From NCBI GenBank assembly GCA_900088475.1, contig FLMG01002834.1, positions 1 to 37,299 of the forward strand: a stretch of 37,299 bases of DNA, in the 5' to 3' direction. Every line of letters begins with the position of its first letter. Positions within the stretch are counted from its first letter, which is position 1. This DNA comes from Hyphochytrium catenoides. Its lineage: Eukaryota > Protista > Hyphochytriomycota. The position numbers were made by a program, and so were the translations under genes. Below the pieces are notes generated by a model that was not told where the DNA came from, did not search any database, and worked only from the letters and a program-made list of their open reading frames with translations. Below are positions 25,728-37,236 of this stretch, one piece after another.

Positions 25728-27038
25728 CTACCGAATGAACGCGATAAGCAAGGTCAAGATAGCTAGTGCTTCGAGCCCCAGTGATGTGGTTGCGACCAAT
25801 AGAGGAGAGCCAAGTGCGTCATAAAGGTAACCTAATAAGGCGCTACCCAGGGCCCAGCTGATCCCGAAGAGCCCGTTCGCGATGCCGTAAGCACTACTCC
25901 GCCGCTCGGCCGGGACGATGTCAGCGATGATCGCGGAGACAGCAGCACCCTGAACGCCCATTCCTAAGCCCCAGCAGATGATTCCAGCCCAAACCAGTGT
26001 TTTAGCCCCTAGTAACATGAGCGGGGCTGAGAGAGAGGCAACTCCGATTGCTATAGCAACTGCACTTATTCCGTACTGGTCAAAGAGTGTTCCTACTGCT
26101 AAGGCAGTGACGGCCTCTACGGCCATAGCTGTAGAATACATCAAAGGTATCGTGTGAGCTCCAAACAGCTCAGCCTTGTGAAAGTGGTAGGCATATAGAG
26201 GAAAGTCTATGTAACCAGCCGCCATAAAACAGTTTCCGACGACAAACACCCAAAAGTTTTGTCTTAGGCGTCTAGCAGACGGAACCCTTTTCGTTGTCTC
26301 CAGATCTTGAGGATGAGGAAACAGCCATCTCGCCGCTGCCAGTGCCATAATGGCCAATATTCCAGGCATGACTAGCACAGCGAAGGCTGCTTTATAACTT
26401 ATAAGCTCTTCGTCACCAAGTGAAATTTTCCAGGATATCACAGCAGAAACGATAATAGGACCAGCGACTGCTCCGACCTGGTCCATGAATTGGTGGATGC
26501 CAAAGCCGCGGCCATGGCCTAGATGCCCCGTGGCATAAGACAACATTGCATCTCTTGCAGGCTTTCGAATTCCCTTACCAAGCCTTTCACCTACCAGTAA
26601 GGCGACCACCTGCTGCCACGTTGAGGCGACTGACAAGAGACAGACAGACGCAACAGTCACGATATACCCCAAGAACACCGCACCCCAATAAAAACCACTC
26701 TTCTCCGTGGCGTAACCTGGATAAGCGCACAGCGAGAGGAGTTAGCCACCTCAATGAGCCTTCTTGAGCTACGCGCGCGCACCTGAGACAAACCGAAAAG
26801 AATATCCAATAAACTCTCCGGACCCGACCACCACCCCGACCGCTGTGGCAGATGATCCTAGAAGTGCCAGATAGGGTCCACTCACGCTTCTGGCGCCCTC
26901 ATATGTCAGATCTGCAAATAAACTGCAGAAACCAAGGAGGACCACAAACTGCAGCGCTAAACGAGAGGTCAATGGAGGCGGTGTGCTAGGAGAAGGACCT
27001 TCCTCCACGACAAGAAGGGTTGACCTTTCTGTAGCCAT
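25728..27038 (-). CDS. Major facilitator superfamily transporter of prokaryote-like type; one intron (26717-26782)
   Basis: FVVLLGFCSLFADLTYEGARSVSGPYLALLG, ERLGKGIRKPARDAMLS, GRGFGIHQFMDQVGAVAGP, GTLFDQYG and ERRSSAYG, with about 12 hydrophobic segments. Confidence 0.9.
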
Positions 27039-27185: not shown

Positions 27186-27798
27186 GCACTGAATGAGTAG
27201 GAGGATCATGACAGCAGAAAGATGCGAAGATCAGAATATCTTCCTGAACCGTTTCTTCCCTCTGTGAACAGTTCTAAGTTCTTCAAGACCAAGGTTCTCC
27301 TAAAGTCCGTTTCTTCACAATCTGTGTGTCAATTATGTACAGTTTGTTTCACCAGTCTGTGTGAATTGGGCGCTAATTGCAGAGTAACTCACATGTATGG
27401 GGCCCTTTGCGAATTAGGCTGTCAGTAGAGAAGGAAGCTTTGGTTTATTGGGCACGATTATTGGCAGTAAAGAAAACTCCTTATAGTTCTCCCTATCCAT
27501 CAGCTTCATCAGTGATGAGCAATGAGCAACGAAGTGCTGCCAAGAGGAGAGTTATTGTTAGCTGTCGGAGGTAGTCTAGCGAGCCTTATCGGTCAGTTGA
27601 CGTGAGTTCAATGCACGGTTTGGCCTTGAGCTGCATAGACGTTTGATTGCGTTGGAGTGATTATGTTTTCTCAATGAAATCGAGATAACTGCTGGCAAGA
27701 GTTCGTGTCTACGACCGCGTGATGCAAGAAACCGCTTGCTAATCGACAGGTCTAGGCAGTGGCCCGATACTGGTGCGGCAACGTTAGAGGTGGGAACG

Positions 27799-29481
27799 AT
27801 GCAGTATTTGAGGACGATGGGAGGGCAGCGACTACTGTCTACCAGCGTATCGATAGCTGGCCGTAGACAGAAACGGACCACCAGCCTAGGCATGGCGGGA
27901 GGTGTCATCTCTGCCGCTGCTCTCTCTATAACCGCCCTAGGAGTATACAAGTATGAGAGTGACGAAGGCTTCCGGCGCTCGGTGGTCTTCTGGAGCAAGG
28001 CGTTCCCCGTCTATGTGCATTACAGGCTGACACAGAACTGGGTGAAGAATAAGCCGGACCCTGAGCAAGAAGTGATATACGAGAAGCTCCACGACCGCCA
28101 TGCACCGACAATGCTCGATGTTATTCTCACCCTGCGGGGATTCTACATCAAAATAGGACAAGTGGGTGCTACTAGAGCAGACTTTTTGCCTCCGCAATAC
28201 ATCGATCGGTTATCTGTATTGCAGGATGGCTGCCCTTCTGAAGAGTTCGAGAGCGTGAAGGCTACCATTGAGCACGACTTGGGGCGCCCAATGGATGAAG
28301 TGTTTGCATACTTCGACCCCAAGCCTATTGGCTCTGCCTCTATAGGTCAGGCGCATCTCGCTCGTCTAAAGAACGGAGATCAGGTGGTTGTAAAGGTGCA
28401 GTACCCCAAGGTTGAAGGTCTCTTCAGAGGAGACGTCAACAATATTCGAGCATTTTGTGAGCTAGCTCAACCTGCTCATTTGGTGCTCCTTGATGAGATC
28501 GAGAAGCAGTTCCTTACGGAGTTTGACTACCAAAAAGAGGCACAACACCTTGAGAGAGTGGGTCAGAACCTGGCAAGGTCCCCGTATCGGAAGATGGTTG
28601 CTGTCCCGAAACCCTATCTTGACCTCTGCACCAAAAAAGTCCTTGTCATGTCTTATCTTCCCGGTGTAAAGTTCGTGGACGCAATCAAGAAGGAGTATGA
28701 GCACATCGCAGCGGAGCGTGGTATGACTTTGAAGGAGCTCGAGAAACGCCACAGAGAAGAAGTAGCTGCGGGCTTGGTTCCTGCCTTACCATCGGCGAAA
28801 CAGATTAGGACGTACAGTAGATACCTGAAGCTCAAAGATGCGGCCAGTAATACGTGGAGATTCCTCTTTAACCATACAGCGGGATACTTAGGCTATCAGG
28901 TGCCATACGTAAAGACGCGACTCCCAATCAACATTCCAGAGATTATGGATAAGCTTGTGGCGGTGCATGCGCATGAGATTTTTGTCGACGGCTACTTCAA
29001 CGGCGACCCTCATCCTGGCAATATCCTTCTAATGCCAGATGGTAGGCTAGGGCTGATTGACTATGGTCAAGTGAAGCAAATGGACGTCGCCTCTAGAAGG
29101 AAGCTTGCCAAGCTCATCATCGCGCTGGCTGAGGAGGATAAGGAGGCGATCGTGAGAGCGATGAGAGAGATGGGGTTCCGCTCTACCAAGCAGGACCCCT
29201 ACGTTGCCGAGAAAATGGCTATTATTGGCTTCGATCGTGATGGGATGGACGTGACGGAGGGGAAGAATATTCAGATGTTCTTTGAGGATTTAGATGCCAG
29301 AGACAAGGTTATCTCTGCGGCAGATGAATATGTGATGGCCTCAAGGGTTTCTTTGCTTCTTCGGGGCCTTGGGACGGTTTTGAACTATCCAATGTCAACA
29401 GCAAAGATGTGGAAGCCAGTGGCAGAGAAATTTCTCAAGGACACGGACAAAGTCGTCTTGGATGAGCCCAGACTACAATAG
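27799..29481 (+). CDS. ABC1/UbiB/ADCK atypical kinase, intronless, likely mitochondrial
   Basis: GFYIKIGQ (KxGQ motif), IGSASIGQAH, VVVKVQYP, EFDYQKEA, FNGDPHPGNIL and LIDYGQ, with an Arg-rich N-terminus and a hydrophobic segment. Confidence 0.95.
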   Translation: MQYLRTMGGQRLLSTSVSIAGRRQKRTTSLGMAGGVISAAALSITALGVYKYESDEGFRRSVVFWSKAFPVYVHYRLTQNWVKNKPDPEQEVIYEKLHDRHAPTMLDVILTLRGFYIKIGQVGATRADFLPPQYIDRLSVLQDGCPSEEFESVKATIEHDLGRPMDEVFAYFDPKPIGSASIGQAHLARLKNGDQVVVKVQYPKVEGLFRGDVNNIRAFCELAQPAHLVLLDEIEKQFLTEFDYQKEAQHLERVGQNLARSPYRKMVAVPKPYLDLCTKKVLVMSYLPGVKFVDAIKKEYEHIAAERGMTLKELEKRHREEVAAGLVPALPSAKQIRTYSRYLKLKDAASNTWRFLFNHTAGYLGYQVPYVKTRLPINIPEIMDKLVAVHAHEIFVDGYFNGDPHPGNILLMPDGRLGLIDYGQVKQMDVASRRKLAKLIIALAEEDKEAIVRAMREMGFRSTKQDPYVAEKMAIIGFDRDGMDVTEGKNIQMFFEDLDARDKVISAADEYVMASRVSLLLRGLGTVLNYPMSTAKMWKPVAEKFLKDTDKVVLDEPRLQ

Positions 29482-30804
29482 AAAAGGCAAAGCAACAACT
29501 CCAGGGTTAGACCTCTATATATTGCCCTTAGCGAAATAAGTAAGGAAACTAGTTCAATCCGGTGTCATGATGAGCCAGCGGACCGACGATGCTACTCTCG
29601 AAGGCTATAGCTTCCTGAGTTCGCCTTCTCCAATGCAGTACAATGGATTCTTGCTCCCTGGCATCTATAGCGTCCCTTACTCCACTATAACAGCTAGGGC
29701 AATCCTTCCCCTGGTGCCAATCAAGGCAAAAGCACAACGCCGCCATCGGGAGCAAGCAAGATATATCCTAATCGCCGGAGGTGAGGAGTCAAGTATCGGA
29801 TGAGACTATTCTATGTAGACGAGCTACTTTGCGCCTTCACGCATCAACCGTGTACACGGAGGGTGCGAACCAGGAGTATGTGGATGCCTTCAGCAAGAAG
29901 AAAAGTTCTCAGGCTTGGGACGTGGTGCCTCTGTGGTCTATCTATGGATCCGCTCTCCCAACAAAATTTTGCTTTCTTCTTCTCAACCCGTCAGTTACAT
30001 CGTTCTTATTCTACAGAAACCTGACAATTACGAGGCATAAATCATAGAACCTCGTCAAGAATGGATAGTTATTGACAATGGACTCTTCTTCTTGTGTTGC
30101 ATCAATAGCTAGGAAATTCACAGATTGTCAAGAACAGGTGTGGAGTTTGTCATAAGTTGGGTCCACACTGTTTTGGTGCTGAAAATAGCCCATCAACAGG
30201 CTGCACACTCCGCGCTGTGGCCTCCAGACCCCAAGAGCTTGGGCTCCCTCGTTGTTGCTGCTCCTCCTTCTCTGGCAAGACAACTGCATCGATGGCCAAC
30301 ATTCACTGCCTCAGGATGGCCTTTGCTGGGTGCTACGGCTTGTCCAGAGGCTTGAGTGTGAGGATCTCAGGTGGTGCAGGCATCCATCTGCCCCAAAGGG
30401 TATTAATAAACTGCGACGCTTCGGCCCACTTGCCAGAAGCACTATTAATAGAGACTTTCTTTCCCTTCAGTAGTGATAAGGGCTGTGGAGTCACCTAGTT
30501 GAACTTTCTCTTGCTACGTCCTCATTTCTTCCCGTTTGTCAGCCCAGGCAGAGGAAGATCGACCTCCAGAGCCGAGTGGAGATTATGGCCCATAAGACAT
30601 CCTATGACAACTGATAGGCCTTAGTATAGTCCTGGCAGCCCTCGATGTGATTCTCGTAAGCTCAAGAGAGCGTCATTTATCGATTAACAAGCCACAGGAC
30701 CCACGATAGTGTGTCAGCCATATCTCAAAGTACTAGCAGCATTGTGATCGTCAGCTCATATCCGTCCAGATTTAGTGCTCCGTCAGTTTGCATTACTGCG
30801 CAAA

Positions 30805-31869
30805 ATGAGGCCCATCGCACCCCAACTCGCAATCTCAGCAGCACATGCTGTTCCATCTAAAGGGCTCAGCTTGAATACGGAGTACGCTATCAAATTTCTT
30901 GGCGGAGTCCTTGTTCTCTACCCCATCACACATTTGGAAGACCTCAATGACGGCTTGCAGAATTTGGTAGCCGGCGGAATCGCGGGAGTGGTCTCCCGGA
31001 CTATCACAGCTCCAATGGACAGAATTCGGATAGTGTTGCAGGCTGGCGTGGTTGGGCCACATCATGTCACCATTCCTAAGGACTTGAAAGGGATGTCTAT
31101 AGCAGAGAAGTCTCGCATTCTGAGGACAGCAAGAACCATCTACCTTGAAGGAGGTTTGATAGGCTTCTTTAAGGGTAACGCCGCCAACATTATGAAGGTG
31201 ACTCCAGAGACAGCCATTAAGTTCTACGCCAATCAGAAGCTCATGGACGCCATCAATCGGGATAAGAACAATATCAAGACAAGTGAACGCTTCCTCTCTG
31301 GAGCGACCGCAGGTCTCGTTGCCCAATCCATGGTCTACCCATTGGAGGTTGTTAGGACAAGGATGGCTCTATCAAAGCCAGGGCAATACCGAAGCATCTT
31401 GCACTGTATGTCCTGCACTGTCAGGGATGAGGGCATGCGAAAGATGTATAGGGGCTTAGCCCCATCCCTCCTAGGTATCGTCCCCTATGCAGGAGTAGAG
31501 TTGACCACGTTCAACACCGTGAAAGACTGGTATAGAAAAAAGTACTCAACCAACCACGTACCGGTGCCATATCTACTCATGTTTGGCGGTCTCTCGTCTA
31601 TTGTGGCCCAGGCAGTCTCCTACCCCTTACAGCTGATCCGGACTAAGCTTCAGGCGCAAGGCATGCCTGGGCGTCCTGTGCAGTACAATGGAATGGTTGA
31701 TTGCTTCAGACAGGTCATCCGACAAGAAGGATTGGTTGGCCTTTATAGAGGTATCCTCCCAGGATCTGTCAAGACTGTACCTGCCATCGGCATCAGTTAT
31801 ACCACCTTTGAGACCGTGAAGTCCAGGCTAGGAATTGAGAAATCTGAACAAAAGGCCCATCGCCACTAA
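30805..31869 (+). CDS. Mitochondrial carrier (SLC25), SCaMC/ATP-Mg:Pi-carrier-like, intronless
   Basis: Three carrier repeats (PMDRIR, PLEVVRTR, PLQLIRTK). AGGIAGVVSRT, KGNAANIMKVTPETAIKF and YRGLAPSLLGIVPYAG are typical of SLC25A23/24/25-like carriers. Confidence 0.93.
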   Translation: MRPIAPQLAISAAHAVPSKGLSLNTEYAIKFLGGVLVLYPITHLEDLNDGLQNLVAGGIAGVVSRTITAPMDRIRIVLQAGVVGPHHVTIPKDLKGMSIAEKSRILRTARTIYLEGGLIGFFKGNAANIMKVTPETAIKFYANQKLMDAINRDKNNIKTSERFLSGATAGLVAQSMVYPLEVVRTRMALSKPGQYRSILHCMSCTVRDEGMRKMYRGLAPSLLGIVPYAGVELTTFNTVKDWYRKKYSTNHVPVPYLLMFGGLSSIVAQAVSYPLQLIRTKLQAQGMPGRPVQYNGMVDCFRQVIRQEGLVGLYRGILPGSVKTVPAIGISYTTFETVKSRLGIEKSEQKAHRH

Positions 31870-33283: not shown

Positions 33284-33429
33284 CGAATCTGAGAGTGGAG
33301 AGACTGATTCTCATGCTCTCCCATCATCTGTGACCTGTGACTGGCTCCATAGAGGCAAGAATTAGATGACCTGTGACTGGCTCCACCTAGCAGTACGAAT
33401 CTGAGAGTGGAGAGACTAATTCTTGCCTC
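33284..33429. repeat. Composite A-B-B-A direct repeats with an overlapping 14-bp inverted repeat
   Basis: A = 33284-33311 and 33396-33423 (1 mismatch). B = 33331-33349 and 33367-33385. Inverted repeat = 33352-33365 and 33416-33429. Confidence 0.85.
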
Positions 33430-33500
33430 AGTACGGTCCAGTAGTTGCAAAACTACTCAGCCAGTCTTAGGCCCTAGGAACCGAGCTAAACTTGCTTAGA

Positions 33501-36017
33501 ATGGTACTTTCGCTGTGCGGCCCCTCACTACTGGACCGTACTGCTAGGTCGATAACTGCCACTTCCGCGATGGTAATGACATCTAAACGCCTTCTTCGTC
33601 GCCCAAACTGCCCTTCGAGTCGGTTCTTACTGTCACAGCAAGCACGGTATCTATGTCCATCTCCCTCTCTCGGCAACTGCGGGAACTTCTCCGGTCAGAC
33701 ACCAGCAAAGAGTTCTGGCTGGCGCCATGGCCTACGGGTGTCGCAACCGTTCACACCGATAACGAGGCTGCCGGCCGCTCATAAGCAGCTTTTGCGTGTA
33801 CGGTGTCTGAGCTCTGACAGAAATGGACAGAAGAGAGCGCAGGGTAGAAGTGATCTAAATATCAAAGGGCATGACCTTAAGAATGCTGACCTAAGGAAGC
33901 TTTCAAGAAGAGACCAGTTGAAGATCTTAACAGCAGCAATGAACACGGCGGCTATGACTGGGGATGTAAGAGCTGCTGAAGAAATTTTAGTTAAACGTAT
34001 GCCTCAACTTGGGCTGGCTCCCGATCAAATCAGTTGCGGGGTCCTTCTCAAGACTTACATCCGAAACAACCAGCTGGCCAAGGGAGAGCTATTCATCTCA
34101 TCAGAGATGCTACGCTTTGGTGTCAGGCCGTCAACGGAGCACTTTAACATTCTGATTGAAGGCTATGCGTCTCGTGGAGAGCTGGAGGCTGTGGAAGAGA
34201 TTCTGTACCATCGGATGGCGGAGGCTGGCGTCCAACCAGATGCAACGACGTGTGGTGGCGTACTGAAGGCATATGTACGGAATCGTGCGCTGAGCAAGGC
34301 GGAGGAGTTTATCTCTTCCAGGATGATAGGCTTTAACGTCACGCCTGATATTCGGACCTTCAACGTGTTGCTGGATGGCTATGGCGCCGCTGGGGATATT
34401 GCTGCGGTAGAAGATATTTTAGAGACTCGGCTACCGGCCGCGGGACTTACGCCCGACAGATTCACCTGCGGCGCTGTGTTGAAGGCGTATGTTCAAAGCA
34501 ATTATCTGGACAAAGCAGAAGAGTTTTTGTCTAGTAAAATGGCTGAGTACGGCGTGACTCTTGCTGTTGATCACTTCAACGTACTCCTAGGCGGATATGC
34601 ACGCGCAGGGAACATTGCCGAGATCGAGGATATATTTTACAAGCGGATGCCTCAGAAAGGGGTGCGGCCTGACAGGATTACCTGCTCCGCGGTCCTCAAG
34701 GGTTACGTACAAGGAAAAGACTTCGAGGCGGCAGAAAGGTTTCTTGCTGTGGAGATGCGCCGCGCCAAAATTAATCTATCACCTGAGCACTTCACGGTCC
34801 TGCTAAATGGCTATGGAGCGGCACGCGACATAAGAGCTGTGGAAGACATATTTTATGAGCGGATGCCCCAAGCTGGGCTTCATCCCAACGCTATCACTTG
34901 CGGTGCGATGCTGAAGGCCTACGTACAAGCAGGAGAATTGGAGGAGGCGGAAAGGTTCCTATCAGAGGAGATGGGCCGGCTTAAGGTGCGGCCACGTGTA
35001 GCACACTTCAGTATTCTCATTGAGGGCTACGCTGCGTCCAGGCAGATGGAAGAGGTCGACGACATCCTTGAAAGGCGGATGCCAGAGGCACGACTGCGCC
35101 CTGACAAGATCAACTGCGACGTTTTCTTACAGGCGTTAGTACGGAATGATGAACTGGACAAAGCTAAAGAATTTCTAGTCCTTCGGATGCCAAAGCTTAA
35201 GATTTCGCCGGATACAAAGAGTTTCACCATTGTCCTCGAGGGCTACGCCGCTGCTGGCGATGCTCAAGCAGTCCAACTCATCCTGCAGAAACTGATGCCT
35301 ATGGCGGGGGTGAAGGCCACAGCTGTCACTTGTAGGGCTATCCTGAACGCGTACGTGCAAAGCGGTGAGATGGGAAAGGCGGAGGAATTCTTAGCTTCTG
35401 AAATGCCAAAGCTCAACCTGAAGCCCAAAGCCCAGGACTTTACTATTCTCCTCGAGGGCTATGGCAAGCTTCGAAATCTAGCATCTTTGGAGGAGCTGCT
35501 CTACAAGCGGATGCCTGAGGCAGGAGTTATGCCGAACACCATTACTTGTGGTGTCGTTATCAAAGCTCTTGTGCGCAACCATGACCTCGAGAGAGCCGAG
35601 AAGTTCCTAACTGAGGAGATGCCACACCGTTTCAATTTGCAGCCAAAGGTGGAGCACTTCACGACTTTACTGACAGGATATGCGGCAGCTGGGGATGTGC
35701 AGGCGGTGGAAAACATACTTAACTGGCGCATGCGAGACGCTGGTGTGAGACCTAACGCGATCACCTGCAGTGCGGTCCTTCGGGCGTACGTGCGGAACAA
35801 CCAGCTAAAGACCGCTGAAGACTTTCTGGTTGTTGACATGCCCCTCATGGACTTTCGGCCGACAGCTGAACAATGGAACATTCTAATGGATGGTCTGGCC
35901 GCTGCTGGAGAGCGAGAAGCCGTAGAAGAGATCTTGTACAGACGCATGCCAGCCGCGGGTGTAGCGCCTAATGAAGCTTCAGAGGCCATACTCAGAAGAG
36001 TAACTCAAGCAGGCTAA
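33501..36017 (+). CDS. Pentatricopeptide-repeat (PPR) protein, intronless, about 838 aa, with organellar presequence and about 19 repeats of 36 aa
   Basis: Arg/Ser/Leu-rich N-terminus followed by repeats such as TEHFNILIEGYASRGELEAVEEILYHRMAEAGVQPD. No E or DYW extension is visible. Confidence 0.93.
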   Translation: MVLSLCGPSLLDRTARSITATSAMVMTSKRLLRRPNCPSSRFLLSQQARYLCPSPSLGNCGNFSGQTPAKSSGWRHGLRVSQPFTPITRLPAAHKQLLRVRCLSSDRNGQKRAQGRSDLNIKGHDLKNADLRKLSRRDQLKILTAAMNTAAMTGDVRAAEEILVKRMPQLGLAPDQISCGVLLKTYIRNNQLAKGELFISSEMLRFGVRPSTEHFNILIEGYASRGELEAVEEILYHRMAEAGVQPDATTCGGVLKAYVRNRALSKAEEFISSRMIGFNVTPDIRTFNVLLDGYGAAGDIAAVEDILETRLPAAGLTPDRFTCGAVLKAYVQSNYLDKAEEFLSSKMAEYGVTLAVDHFNVLLGGYARAGNIAEIEDIFYKRMPQKGVRPDRITCSAVLKGYVQGKDFEAAERFLAVEMRRAKINLSPEHFTVLLNGYGAARDIRAVEDIFYERMPQAGLHPNAITCGAMLKAYVQAGELEEAERFLSEEMGRLKVRPRVAHFSILIEGYAASRQMEEVDDILERRMPEARLRPDKINCDVFLQALVRNDELDKAKEFLVLRMPKLKISPDTKSFTIVLEGYAAAGDAQAVQLILQKLMPMAGVKATAVTCRAILNAYVQSGEMGKAEEFLASEMPKLNLKPKAQDFTILLEGYGKLRNLASLEELLYKRMPEAGVMPNTITCGVVIKALVRNHDLERAEKFLTEEMPHRFNLQPKVEHFTTLLTGYAAAGDVQAVENILNWRMRDAGVRPNAITCSAVLRAYVRNNQLKTAEDFLVVDMPLMDFRPTAEQWNILMDGLAAAGEREAVEEILYRRMPAAGVAPNEASEAILRRVTQAG

Positions 36018-36627
36018 AGCCTCGTATGGTCAAGCCGATTATTCTGGTTCCCAGGCCACACTCTCTCTCTTTTCGGACGAAAAAATAATGCTCGCATTGC
36101 CTCCATGCGGGTCCCACTTCTTCTGGCGTCACTGCGGATCCCTGTGCTTCGACCAGACGAAGCAGCGGGTACCTCAACTACTGATAACTGCGCTTTCTCA
36201 TTGGACGAAGTAAATAAACGAGGCCACCTGGTGCTGTCCACGTTCATCCCAGATCCCTTGAAGACGATCGCAATATCTTTTTGAGCAGCCAATAGAGTAT
36301 GGGCCAATAGATGGCGGGGGGTCCACAAAGTGACAGGACACGCACAGAGAGAGGGAGAGTGGTGGACAAGGAAGACTTGACCAACTAGAAGAGAAATATT
36401 AGCGTGCCACGCTGCCCACAAGAGACTTATCTCAGGGAGAGTTGAGCGATATAGCAGCTCTCGTAAGGGAAGAAATAGAGAAGCCCAGCCAAATGCTATC
36501 TGTCTGCCCTTCTCTGCTCCAGCAGAGAGGCAATATACAATTATACGGGAATTCTAAGGTGGTAGCTTATGCTCCTGAAGGGGACGTAGGTGCATCATAG
36601 ATAGCGTGCTTTGTGGCGTTCTCCTCT

Positions 36628-36681
<54 letters not shown>

Positions 36682-37236
36682 TTCTCTTCTCATGTCTGTT
36701 CTATCAGCTATAACACGACCACCCCACGTTCCCTAATACTTAGTGGCAAAGGGGGCCCTTTCGCTAAGGTCACGCTTGATACGACTGGGCTCTCGGTGAA
36801 TGACTGAGGTCTCTGGAAGTGAGAAAGACAGAGATTATGTGCGATAGAGGGTGTGAGCAAGTGATATACATGGCAAAAAGGTGAAAAGAGGACATAGCAG
36901 AAGTGTGACAGATAGACATAAGAGAGAGAGGACTTCCACCTTCTTCAGCCACTCTTCAAAAGCTCGTGTCTTCGGAGTGTAGGATGGTCTTGCGGCTGGA
37001 GCAGGAGATAATAGTGTCTTCACTGTCTGCAAATTGTCAGTGACGGTTGGCTTCTCAGCTAGCTTCTGCTGCTCCTTTCTCTCCTGAGGAGCGACTCTGG
37101 CCGGCACACTCACCCGCAAGTCAGCTCCTCGTGGCAAACTTAACTCTCTGTGATGGAGTTGAGCACAGGCAAAATGGAGAGGACCAGGCGGAATAAGTAA
37201 CAGTGGTTGGTGAAGCCGTTCAAGGACGGAGGCCAT
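36014..37236 (-). CDS. Possible hypothetical protein; exon structure and 5' end unresolved, may extend beyond the window
   Basis: Two coding-like minus-strand ORFs (36835-37236 and 36014-36421) separated by intron-like CT/AG tracts. No recognised domain. Confidence 0.3.
36631..36672. repeat. (CT)n microsatellite
   Basis: About 20 uninterrupted TC units. Confidence 0.92.

Follow-up and report, generated by a model that had tools for sequence, protein, structure and literature searches.

A PPR protein gene of Hyphochytrium catenoides with two strictly alternating 36-aa repeat types

Background

PPR proteins are the main programmable binders of single-stranded RNA, and nearly all that is established on the PPR code and the PPR motif classes comes from work on land plants. 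The window analysed here, the whole stretch of 37,299 nucleotides from H. catenoides, encodes a PPR array in which two repeat types take turns and the residues of the plant code appear mainly in one of them. This raises the question whether such a protein would read every second base of its RNA target, with the intervening repeats acting as spacers, and to which extent it represents a PPR class of its own. If true, a strict 36+36 architecture with the plant code in one motif only would be a natural experiment on the role of a non-reading repeat in a PPR superhelix, a counterpart of the plant P-L-S scheme that arose independently, and possibly a new scaffold for designer RNA binders.

Gene layout and repeat array

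The first ATG of the PPR reading frame is at position 33501, with an in-frame stop codon upstream at 33468-33470. According to the sequence-only reading, 34026-35972 encodes 18 repeats; translation of this interval indeed gave 649 aa, with 36 aa for each repeat except one of 37 aa (A8, 35538-35648). A tenth B-type repeat (B0), which is degenerate, precedes the nine A/B dyads, so that the array begins one repeat before 34026 and consists of 19 PPR repeats, all of 36 aa apart from A8, followed by a short cap. B0 scored 18.5 bits with the B-HMM versus 5.1 bits with the A-HMM, grouped with the B repeats in clustering and forms a helix pair in the AlphaFold2 model (model residues 2-30). The extra residue of A8 is located at the end of helix b, which has 15 instead of 14 aa in the model. 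In the following list, letter pairs denote residue 5 and the final residue of a repeat; bases are those predicted by the plant-type code or, where indicated, by the designer-PPR data of PMC6468296.

33501-36017, plus strand: complete intron-less PPR coding sequence, 838 aa plus stop codon (open reading frame; Pfam PPR families)
33501-33917, plus strand: non-repeat N-terminal region, 139 aa, presequence-like (composition; no Pfam match)
33918-34025, plus strand: B0, degenerate B-type repeat, pair T5/D36 (TD = G; HMMs, clustering, model)
34026-34241, plus strand: dyad 1; A1 34026-34133, GS; B1 34134-34241, ND = U
34242-34457, plus strand: dyad 2; A2 34242-34349, GD = G (designer PPRs, PMC6468296); B2 34350-34457, ND = U
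34458-34673, plus strand: dyad 3; A3 34458-34565, GA; B3 34566-34673, ND = U
34674-34889, plus strand: dyad 4; A4 34674-34781, SS = weak A (PMC6468296); B4 34782-34889, TN = A
34890-35105, plus strand: dyad 5; A5 34890-34997, GR; B5 34998-35105, SD = G
35106-35321, plus strand: dyad 6; A6 35106-35213, DD; B6 35214-35321, TT = A, weaker G (PMC6468296)
35322-35537, plus strand: dyad 7; A7 35322-35429, RK; B7 35430-35537, TN = A
35538-35756, plus strand: dyad 8; A8 35538-35648, 37 aa, GK; B8 35649-35756, TN = A
35757-35972, plus strand: dyad 9; A9 35757-35864, ST = weak A; B9 35865-35972, NN = C/U
35973-36014, plus strand: C-terminal 14 aa, single capping helix (model residues 686-698)

The N-terminus is rich in Arg and Ser, and the first 100 aa of the protein contain 14 K/R, 21 S/T and a single D/E; judged by composition, the N-terminal 139 aa probably comprise a mitochondrial targeting peptide and a linker. 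Behind the last repeat, Pfam and NCBIfam searches detected no E, DYW or further domain (PF20431, PF20430 and PF14432 gave no match). The gene was intact in independent DNA runs. Its allelic SNPs, 18 synonymous and 13 non-synonymous, correspond to a pN/pS of ~0.23, which indicates purifying selection, and none of them alters a position-5 or last residue of a repeat.

An ABC1 kinase is encoded next to the PPR gene. It shows at most 50-56% identity to any database protein, and its nearest named relatives are from oomycetes, Plasmodiophora and Vitrella.

Family membership and fold

The assignment to the PPR superfamily was examined with Pfam PF01535, PF13041 and PF13812 and with TIGR00756 at curated thresholds. 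It was borne out with 211 bits for PPR_2 (1.4e-63; cut-off 30), 188 bits for PPR_3 (2e-56; cut-off 25), 144 bits for PPR (1.9e-43; cut-off 25) and 267 bits for TIGR00756 (1.4e-82; cut-off 20). Taken one at a time, A and B repeats alike matched PF01535 in a common register and with similar scores (13-23 bits); the idea that the two types lie outside the ordinary P motifs was thus not upheld, as each alone scores as a P-like PPR.

The AlphaFold2 model (mean pLDDT 95) consists of 19 regular helix pairs (13 + 14 aa, connected by a 6-aa loop) plus the cap. Foldseek retrieved PPR10 (4m57, E 1.9e-16) and the RNA-bound designer PPR 5i9h_A (target-normalised TM 0.79, rmsd 4.4 A). In the model, the repeats stack into a regular PPR superhelix similar to those of PPR10 and of designer PPRs with bound RNA; how the side chains at positions 2, 5 and 36 are oriented was assumed from the repeat register. 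Since both types are ordinary P-like motifs in Pfam and the model is a regular PPR superhelix, the protein is an unusual variant of a well-known family, with neither a new fold nor a new mechanism.

Foldseek also matched PPR proteins that are subunits of mitoribosomes (plant and trypanosome) or of the plastid RNA polymerase (E 1e-8 to 1e-17). Many non-plant PPRs are structural or assembly proteins, and the array might likewise belong to, for example, a mitoribosomal or polymerase-associated subunit that binds RNA or protein without a modular code and in which the dyads serve packing. However, nothing beyond the shared fold underlies these matches (TM 0.3-0.4, 15-19% identity), the array is unusually regular, without insertions or extra domains, and all ten B repeats have the canonical residues, N/T/S as residue 5 and D/N/T at the end, which structural PPRs as a rule have not kept. 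We regard a purely structural role as quite improbable.

Alternation of two repeat types

Amino-acid identity between repeats was 42% among A and 44% among B, compared with 21% between A and B. The strict alternation that had been proposed was recovered by label-free average-linkage clustering, which gave a perfect 2-1-2-1 pattern over the 19 repeats; for 10 + 9 repeats in random order, the chance of perfect alternation is 1.1e-5. The BLOSUM autocorrelation of the array was +1.35 at lag 72 and +0.30 at lag 36 but negative at lags 35 (-1.07) and 70 (-1.11), and only one of 163 database PPR proteins compared (P0047, see below) showed a positive value at lag 72. A-type repeats carry Ile2, Cys4 and Arg/Gln13, in most cases also Gly5, and vary in their last residue, whereas in B-type repeats residue 5 is Asn, Thr or Ser and the last one is Asp, Asn or Thr. 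The types further differ at position 2, which is hydrophobic in A (I/V/F in 8/9) and mostly charged or polar in B, and at position 13, where the R/Q of A is mostly replaced by Ala in B.

The dyads had been suggested to stem from 216-bp duplications, of which this gene retains no DNA trace. TRF found no tandem repeats in it, identity at third codon positions was 32-35% within a repeat type versus 29% across types, and the A-A and B-B similarity matrices were uncorrelated (Mantel r = 0.07, p = 0.38). Recent tandem duplication was rejected for this gene on the blank TRF result, the third-codon identity and the null Mantel test. The gene is an old member of its family that has diverged.

A further notion is that of a non-functional relic, or of a chance or compositional periodicity that encodes no protein. 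Within a type, 42-44% of the amino acids are identical while third codon positions are near saturation; this, the 838-codon open frame, the strong family HMM scores, the pLDDT of 95 and the pN/pS of ~0.23 all speak against it, and its probability is close to nil.

Code residues in A and B

The residue pairs read from the sequence at the outset agree with our register, both for B1 to B9 (ND, ND, ND, TN, SD, TT, TN, TN, NN) and for A1 to A9 (GS, GD, GA, SS, GR, DD, RK, GK, ST; Cys4 in 9/9). By the code as given in PMC6468296, pairs with an experimentally supported base preference occur in 10/10 B but 3/9 A repeats (Fisher p = 0.003). The claim that the code is confined to every second repeat thus holds in part: base-specifying pairs are concentrated in B, but three A repeats (GD, SS and ST) carry such pairs too. 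In designer PPRs, GD confers strong binding of G, and SS or ST weak binding of A (PMC6468296), so that A may not be a pure spacer. By analogy with plant L motifs, it is plausible that B reads every second base, with A as the spacer.

The alternative would be that both types read bases, A by a lineage-specific non-plant code, which would make the site contiguous over ~19 nt rather than gapped. Gly5, for example, might leave space in which the variable last residue (S/D/A/R/K/T), or another residue, could contact the base. The last position is among the most variable columns of A, with six residue types in nine repeats, and this is how a specificity position would look; relaxed constraint, however, would give equally high variability. 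A purine can be accommodated by Gly, Ala or Cys as residue 5, and GD binds G strongly, whereas the DD pair (for G) and pairs with R at position 5 fail to bind in designer PPRs (PMC6468296), and Lys, Arg or Ala at the last position has no known base preference. We consider base reading by both types rather unlikely.

Search for relatives

A word-index search of 5.8 billion proteins returned generic PPRs only (20-28% identity), and an exhaustive HMMER search of 1.84 billion representative proteins with a nine-dyad profile yielded no family member: the best match, at 259 bits, was spread over 22 stretches and is thus not a true member. JGI metagenome scans, by protein and by a degenerate nucleotide pattern of the B-to-A junction (two matches in the window itself), revealed no relatives, and a literature search on hyphochytrid and stramenopile PPRs turned up no relevant work.

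P0107, a 689-aa PPR of an uncultured eukaryote (ENA/JGI metagenomes), shares the 36-aa period and an 'MPxxGxxP[DN]' ending. BLASTP aligned it with 24% identity over ~480 aa, including a 13-residue insertion and 15 gap positions in all, and its best ungapped diagonals lie at multiples of 36. With no clear preference for 72 over 36, a common 72-aa alternation is not supported, and only the 36-aa period is common to both. P0107 is itself an orphan.

Alternating arrays were found elsewhere, too. In P0073 (UniRef A0A7S1ULX4, from the diatom Grammatophora) and in P0047 (JGI metagenome), a canonical motif takes strict turns with another one, in which residue 5 is often Gly (T-F/Y-G-S...), in a super-repeat of ~72-75 aa. 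Their second motif, however, is longer, at 37-39 aa, and ends in a retained D/N. Homology of their motif types with A and B, and with it a common origin, was not supported: the A- and B-HMMs gave no correspondence with the two types. The existence of these two-type arrays nevertheless means that the idea of alternation is not unique to this lineage.

Proposed function

We propose that the gene encodes an organelle-targeted PPR protein that binds ~19 nt of RNA and acts passively, with B reading alternate bases and A keeping the register at low specificity; we put the probability of this reading at roughly one half. The protein would be nuclear-coded and most likely directed to mitochondria. Its 19 helix-turn-helix repeats would form one continuous superhelix on ~19 nt of single-stranded RNA, at one nucleotide per repeat and with the protein N-terminus at the RNA 5' end. 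B-type repeats would read alternate bases by the plant-type code, and A-type repeats would hold the register and contribute stacking or backbone contacts but little base specificity, in line with the role proposed for plant L motifs. The predicted site is approximately 5'-G n U G U n U a A n G n A n A n A a Y-3', on the basis of a plant-type code that may not hold for 36-aa repeats or for this lineage. As the protein has no catalytic domain, its action on a mitochondrial transcript would probably be passive, i.e. stabilising, protecting, remodelling or presenting it. Because the array is very regular and the model is of high confidence, the A/B question is directly testable with one recombinant protein.

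A more far-reaching proposal is a distinct, lineage-specific 36+36 class in this stramenopile-like soil protist, with B reading, A as obligatory spacer, gapped target motifs and diversification of the family in this genome by TALE-like shuffling of dyads; a multi-motif PPR architecture would then have been invented a second time, independently of the plant PLS class. We regard this as possible but doubtful.

Comparison with known PPR classes

P-class proteins, such as maize PPR10 (PDB 4m57/4m59) and the dPPRs (PDB 5i9f-5i9h), likewise form a helix-turn-helix superhelix without a catalytic domain. They share with the present array the PF01535/TIGR00756 register of each repeat and the canonical 5/last code seen in B, they provide the best structural matches, and the absence of a C-terminal domain fits this class. 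In contrast, their repeats have 35 aa rather than 36, the extra residue here being in the C-terminal half of helix b, and no database PPR exceeds ~20-26% identity to the protein. Nor is their uniform array matched, as the two alternating types have only 21% cross-identity and half of the repeats are without canonical code residues.

The PLS-class RNA-editing factors of plants also alternate motif variants regularly in one array, and one of their variants, like A, has at position 5 a residue that is small or non-polar, and probably does not read bases. The L motifs of these proteins are a precedent for non-reading spacers (PMC7190159). An equation of A with the plant L motif and of B with the S/P motif, prompted by a resemblance to the L2-S2 consensus, was rejected: all HMM matches were below 10 bits, the B matches were on P/S-type motifs, and the best A match was on an S/P-type motif. 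On the PLS proteins P0007 and P0010, the A-HMM gave weak matches to P/S-type motifs rather than to L. As had been proposed, the two-motif alternation is distinct from plant P-L-S: a doublet of 36+36 aa replaces the triplet of 35, 35-36 and 31-32 aa, no 31-32-aa repeat occurs, and instead of the C-terminal E1/E2/DYW domains only 14 aa follow the last repeat. The likeness to the PLS class is thus one of analogy, not of membership.

Gene model and repeat array

Since the first ATG of the frame is preceded by an in-frame stop codon, the simplest model of the PPR gene is an intron-less one:

33492-36017, forward strand: open frame of the PPR gene (ORF listing)
33501-36017, forward strand: intron-less CDS of the PPR protein, 838 codons (first ATG at 33501, upstream in-frame stop at 33468-33470)
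33918-34025, forward strand: B0, a degenerate B-type repeat and the nineteenth of the array (18.5 bits with the B HMM versus 5.1 with the A HMM)

Translation of 34026-35972 yields 649 residues in 18 repeats, each of 36 residues save one of 37 (A8, the A repeat of the eighth A/B dyad), exactly matching the sequence-only reading, whose position-5/last pairs and invariant Cys4 of the A type were likewise reproduced. Inside the array lies an antisense ORF of 162 codons (35501-35989, reverse strand) without independent support, probably a by-product of the codon composition of the PPR repeats. A dinucleotide repeat 3' of the gene (36613-36700), deduced from the translation of ORF 36613..36807 and not from the DNA itself, reads SLSLSLSL in one frame.

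The strict alternation of two repeat types claimed from the sequence was borne out in three ways. Amino-acid identity is 42% among A repeats and 44% among B repeats, but 21% between the types. Label-free average-linkage clustering of the 19 repeats returned a flawless 2-1-2-1 series, for which the chance is 1.1e-5 in a random order of 10+9 repeats. Finally, BLOSUM autocorrelation along the protein is positive at lags 72 (+1.35) and 36 (+0.30) and negative (about -1.1) at lags 35 and 70; just one of 163 collected database PPR proteins shows a positive value at lag 72.

Family assignment and predicted structure

The whole protein matches the Pfam models PPR_2 (1.4e-63), PPR_3, PPR, PPR_long and PPR_1 as well as TIGR00756 (1.4e-82), and no other notable family was found in this search. 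When searched singly, A repeats (15.5-23.4 bits, one A repeat giving no match) and B repeats (13.0-21.6 bits) match PF01535 in the same register, so that both are ordinary P-like motifs for public models, an outcome that the sequence-only reading had itself named as counting against the new two-motif class it proposed. In this register, repeat positions 5 and 36 (the last) correspond to PPR positions 5 and 35.

An AlphaFold2 model of residues 140-838, built from an alignment of 39 PPR segments, reached a mean pLDDT of 95 and consists of 19 identical helix pairs followed by one capping helix. Each unit comprises helix a (13 residues), a turn of 3, helix b (14) and a loop of 6, helix b being extended to 15 residues in A8; modelled secondary structure does not differ between A and B. 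Searched against the PDB with Foldseek, the model matched maize PPR10 (4m57, E 1.9e-16) and RNA-bound designer PPRs, the best of which was 5i9h_A (target-normalised TM 0.79, rmsd 4.4 A over ~10 repeats). From the model and these matches, a normal PPR superhelix is predicted for the array.

RNA recognition by A and B repeats

Besides the position-5/last pairs, A and B differ at further positions facing the RNA. At position 2, which stacks on the base in known PPR structures, 8/9 A repeats have I/V/F and most B repeats a charged or polar residue; at position 13, A repeats have R/Q and B repeats chiefly Ala. For the position-5/last pairs occurring in B, the section consulted of a designer-PPR survey gives ND = U, TN = A, SD and TD = G, NN = C/U, and TT = A with weaker G (PMC6468296). 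All ten B repeats thus carry a pair with an experimentally supported base preference according to this section, compared with three of the nine A repeats (Fisher p = 0.003).

We consider it about an even bet (roughly 0.5) that B repeats would read alternate bases and A repeats would space them. Precedent for non-reading repeats comes from the L motifs of moss PLS proteins, spacers with a non-polar position 5 (PMC7190159). The main rival, a second code carried by the A repeats, seems less likely to us. Among A pairs, the same survey section describes GD as a strong G binder and SS and ST as having smeared A binding, reports no binding in designer PPRs for DD and for pairs with R at position 5, and does not name GS, GA, GR, GK and RK (PMC6468296).

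History of the array

Expansion by 216-bp duplications, as proposed earlier, has left no trace in the gene. TRF found no DNA tandem repeat in it, nucleotide identity within one type is 53-54%, and third-codon identity is 32-35% within types versus 29% across types. Recent duplication of dyads as units would make A-A and B-B similarities correlate across dyads; no such correlation was seen (Mantel r = 0.07, p = 0.38), nor for the alternative B-A pairing (r = -0.05), which rules this scenario out. The array goes back to old duplications whose order can no longer be read, so that the alternation is either a legacy of ancient dyad-wise growth or kept by selection.

Variants and occurrence

The gene is present in DNA runs labelled as the same organism. 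Among 31 single-base CDS variants, 18 are synonymous (605 sites) and 13 non-synonymous (1909 sites), giving a pN/pS of ~0.23, a rough value as some variant contigs may be alleles or close paralogues. None of the 31 changes a position-5 or last residue. Two sequence versions of 35600-36147, ~1-4% different and at about equal depth in both isolate runs, look like either the two alleles of a diploid heterozygote or a paralogue of very recent origin; insertions of 3 nt and 4 nt, following 36051 and 36072, also set them apart in the 3' flank. Just 5' of the start codon (33349-33470), 120 bases are absent from contigs of two DNA runs, and close to this insertion/deletion polymorphism lies a 28-nt direct repeat (33284-33311 and 33396-33423, 112 nt spacing). 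Short fragments (151-nt contigs) 95-99% identical to the gene, on 33727-35503, occur in rhizosphere and groundwater metagenomes; soil and groundwater are habitats of the organism or of one of its close relatives.

Targeting and gene neighbourhood

The first 100 residues contain 14 K/R, 1 D/E and 21 S/T, a composition typical for a mitochondrial presequence, and by this N-terminal composition the protein is likely destined for the mitochondrion. Neighbouring genes 5' of the PPR gene include:

25731-26678, reverse strand: MFS transporter, long exon or ORF (PF07690)
27736-29478, forward strand: ABC1/ADCK atypical kinase, long exon or ORF (PF03109, 1.8e-59)
30775-31866, forward strand: mitochondrial carrier, long exon or ORF (PF00153, 1e-69)

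The nearest named relatives of the ABC1 kinase are from oomycetes (46-49% identity; top database identity 56%). Several genes for mitochondrial proteins surround the PPR gene, a MICU gene at ~18.7 kb included, which is probably coincidence.

Comparison with other PPR proteins

No family member was found in a word-indexed set of 5.8 billion proteins or in JGI metagenome contigs. Nor did one emerge when 1.84 billion representatives were searched exhaustively with a profile, the top matches, at ~12 bits per stretch, being long PPRs of a generic kind from Closterium, Selaginella and metagenomes. An orphan protein from a compact nuclear contig of an uncultured eukaryote (P0107) shares the 36-residue period and the MPxxGxxP ending (24% identity over ~480 residues, with a 13-residue insertion), but unlike the A/B array has no clear 72-residue preference.

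Alternation of two repeat types is not confined to the H. catenoides protein: a protein of the diatom Grammatophora (P0073, UniRef A0A7S1ULX4) and one from a JGI metagenome (P0047) also show it, pairing a canonical motif of 35-36 aa in strict alternation with one of 37-39 aa, T-[FY]-G-S-x-x-x-A-[CW], that often has Gly at position 5. Their two motif types do not correspond to those described by the A and B HMMs. Our literature searches found no description of this doublet architecture; a P/L-like doublet is possibly widespread outside plants.

On the plant PLS proteins compared, both HMMs gave weak matches, all below 10 bits, B matching P/S-type motifs and A at best S/P-type rather than L-type ones; these results and the absence of E/DYW domains exclude the protein from the PLS class. 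Of the proposed new class, what stands is a genuine, strictly alternating two-motif architecture that differs from the P and PLS classes of plants and has no database relatives, built on a fold and individual motifs that are ordinary PPR.
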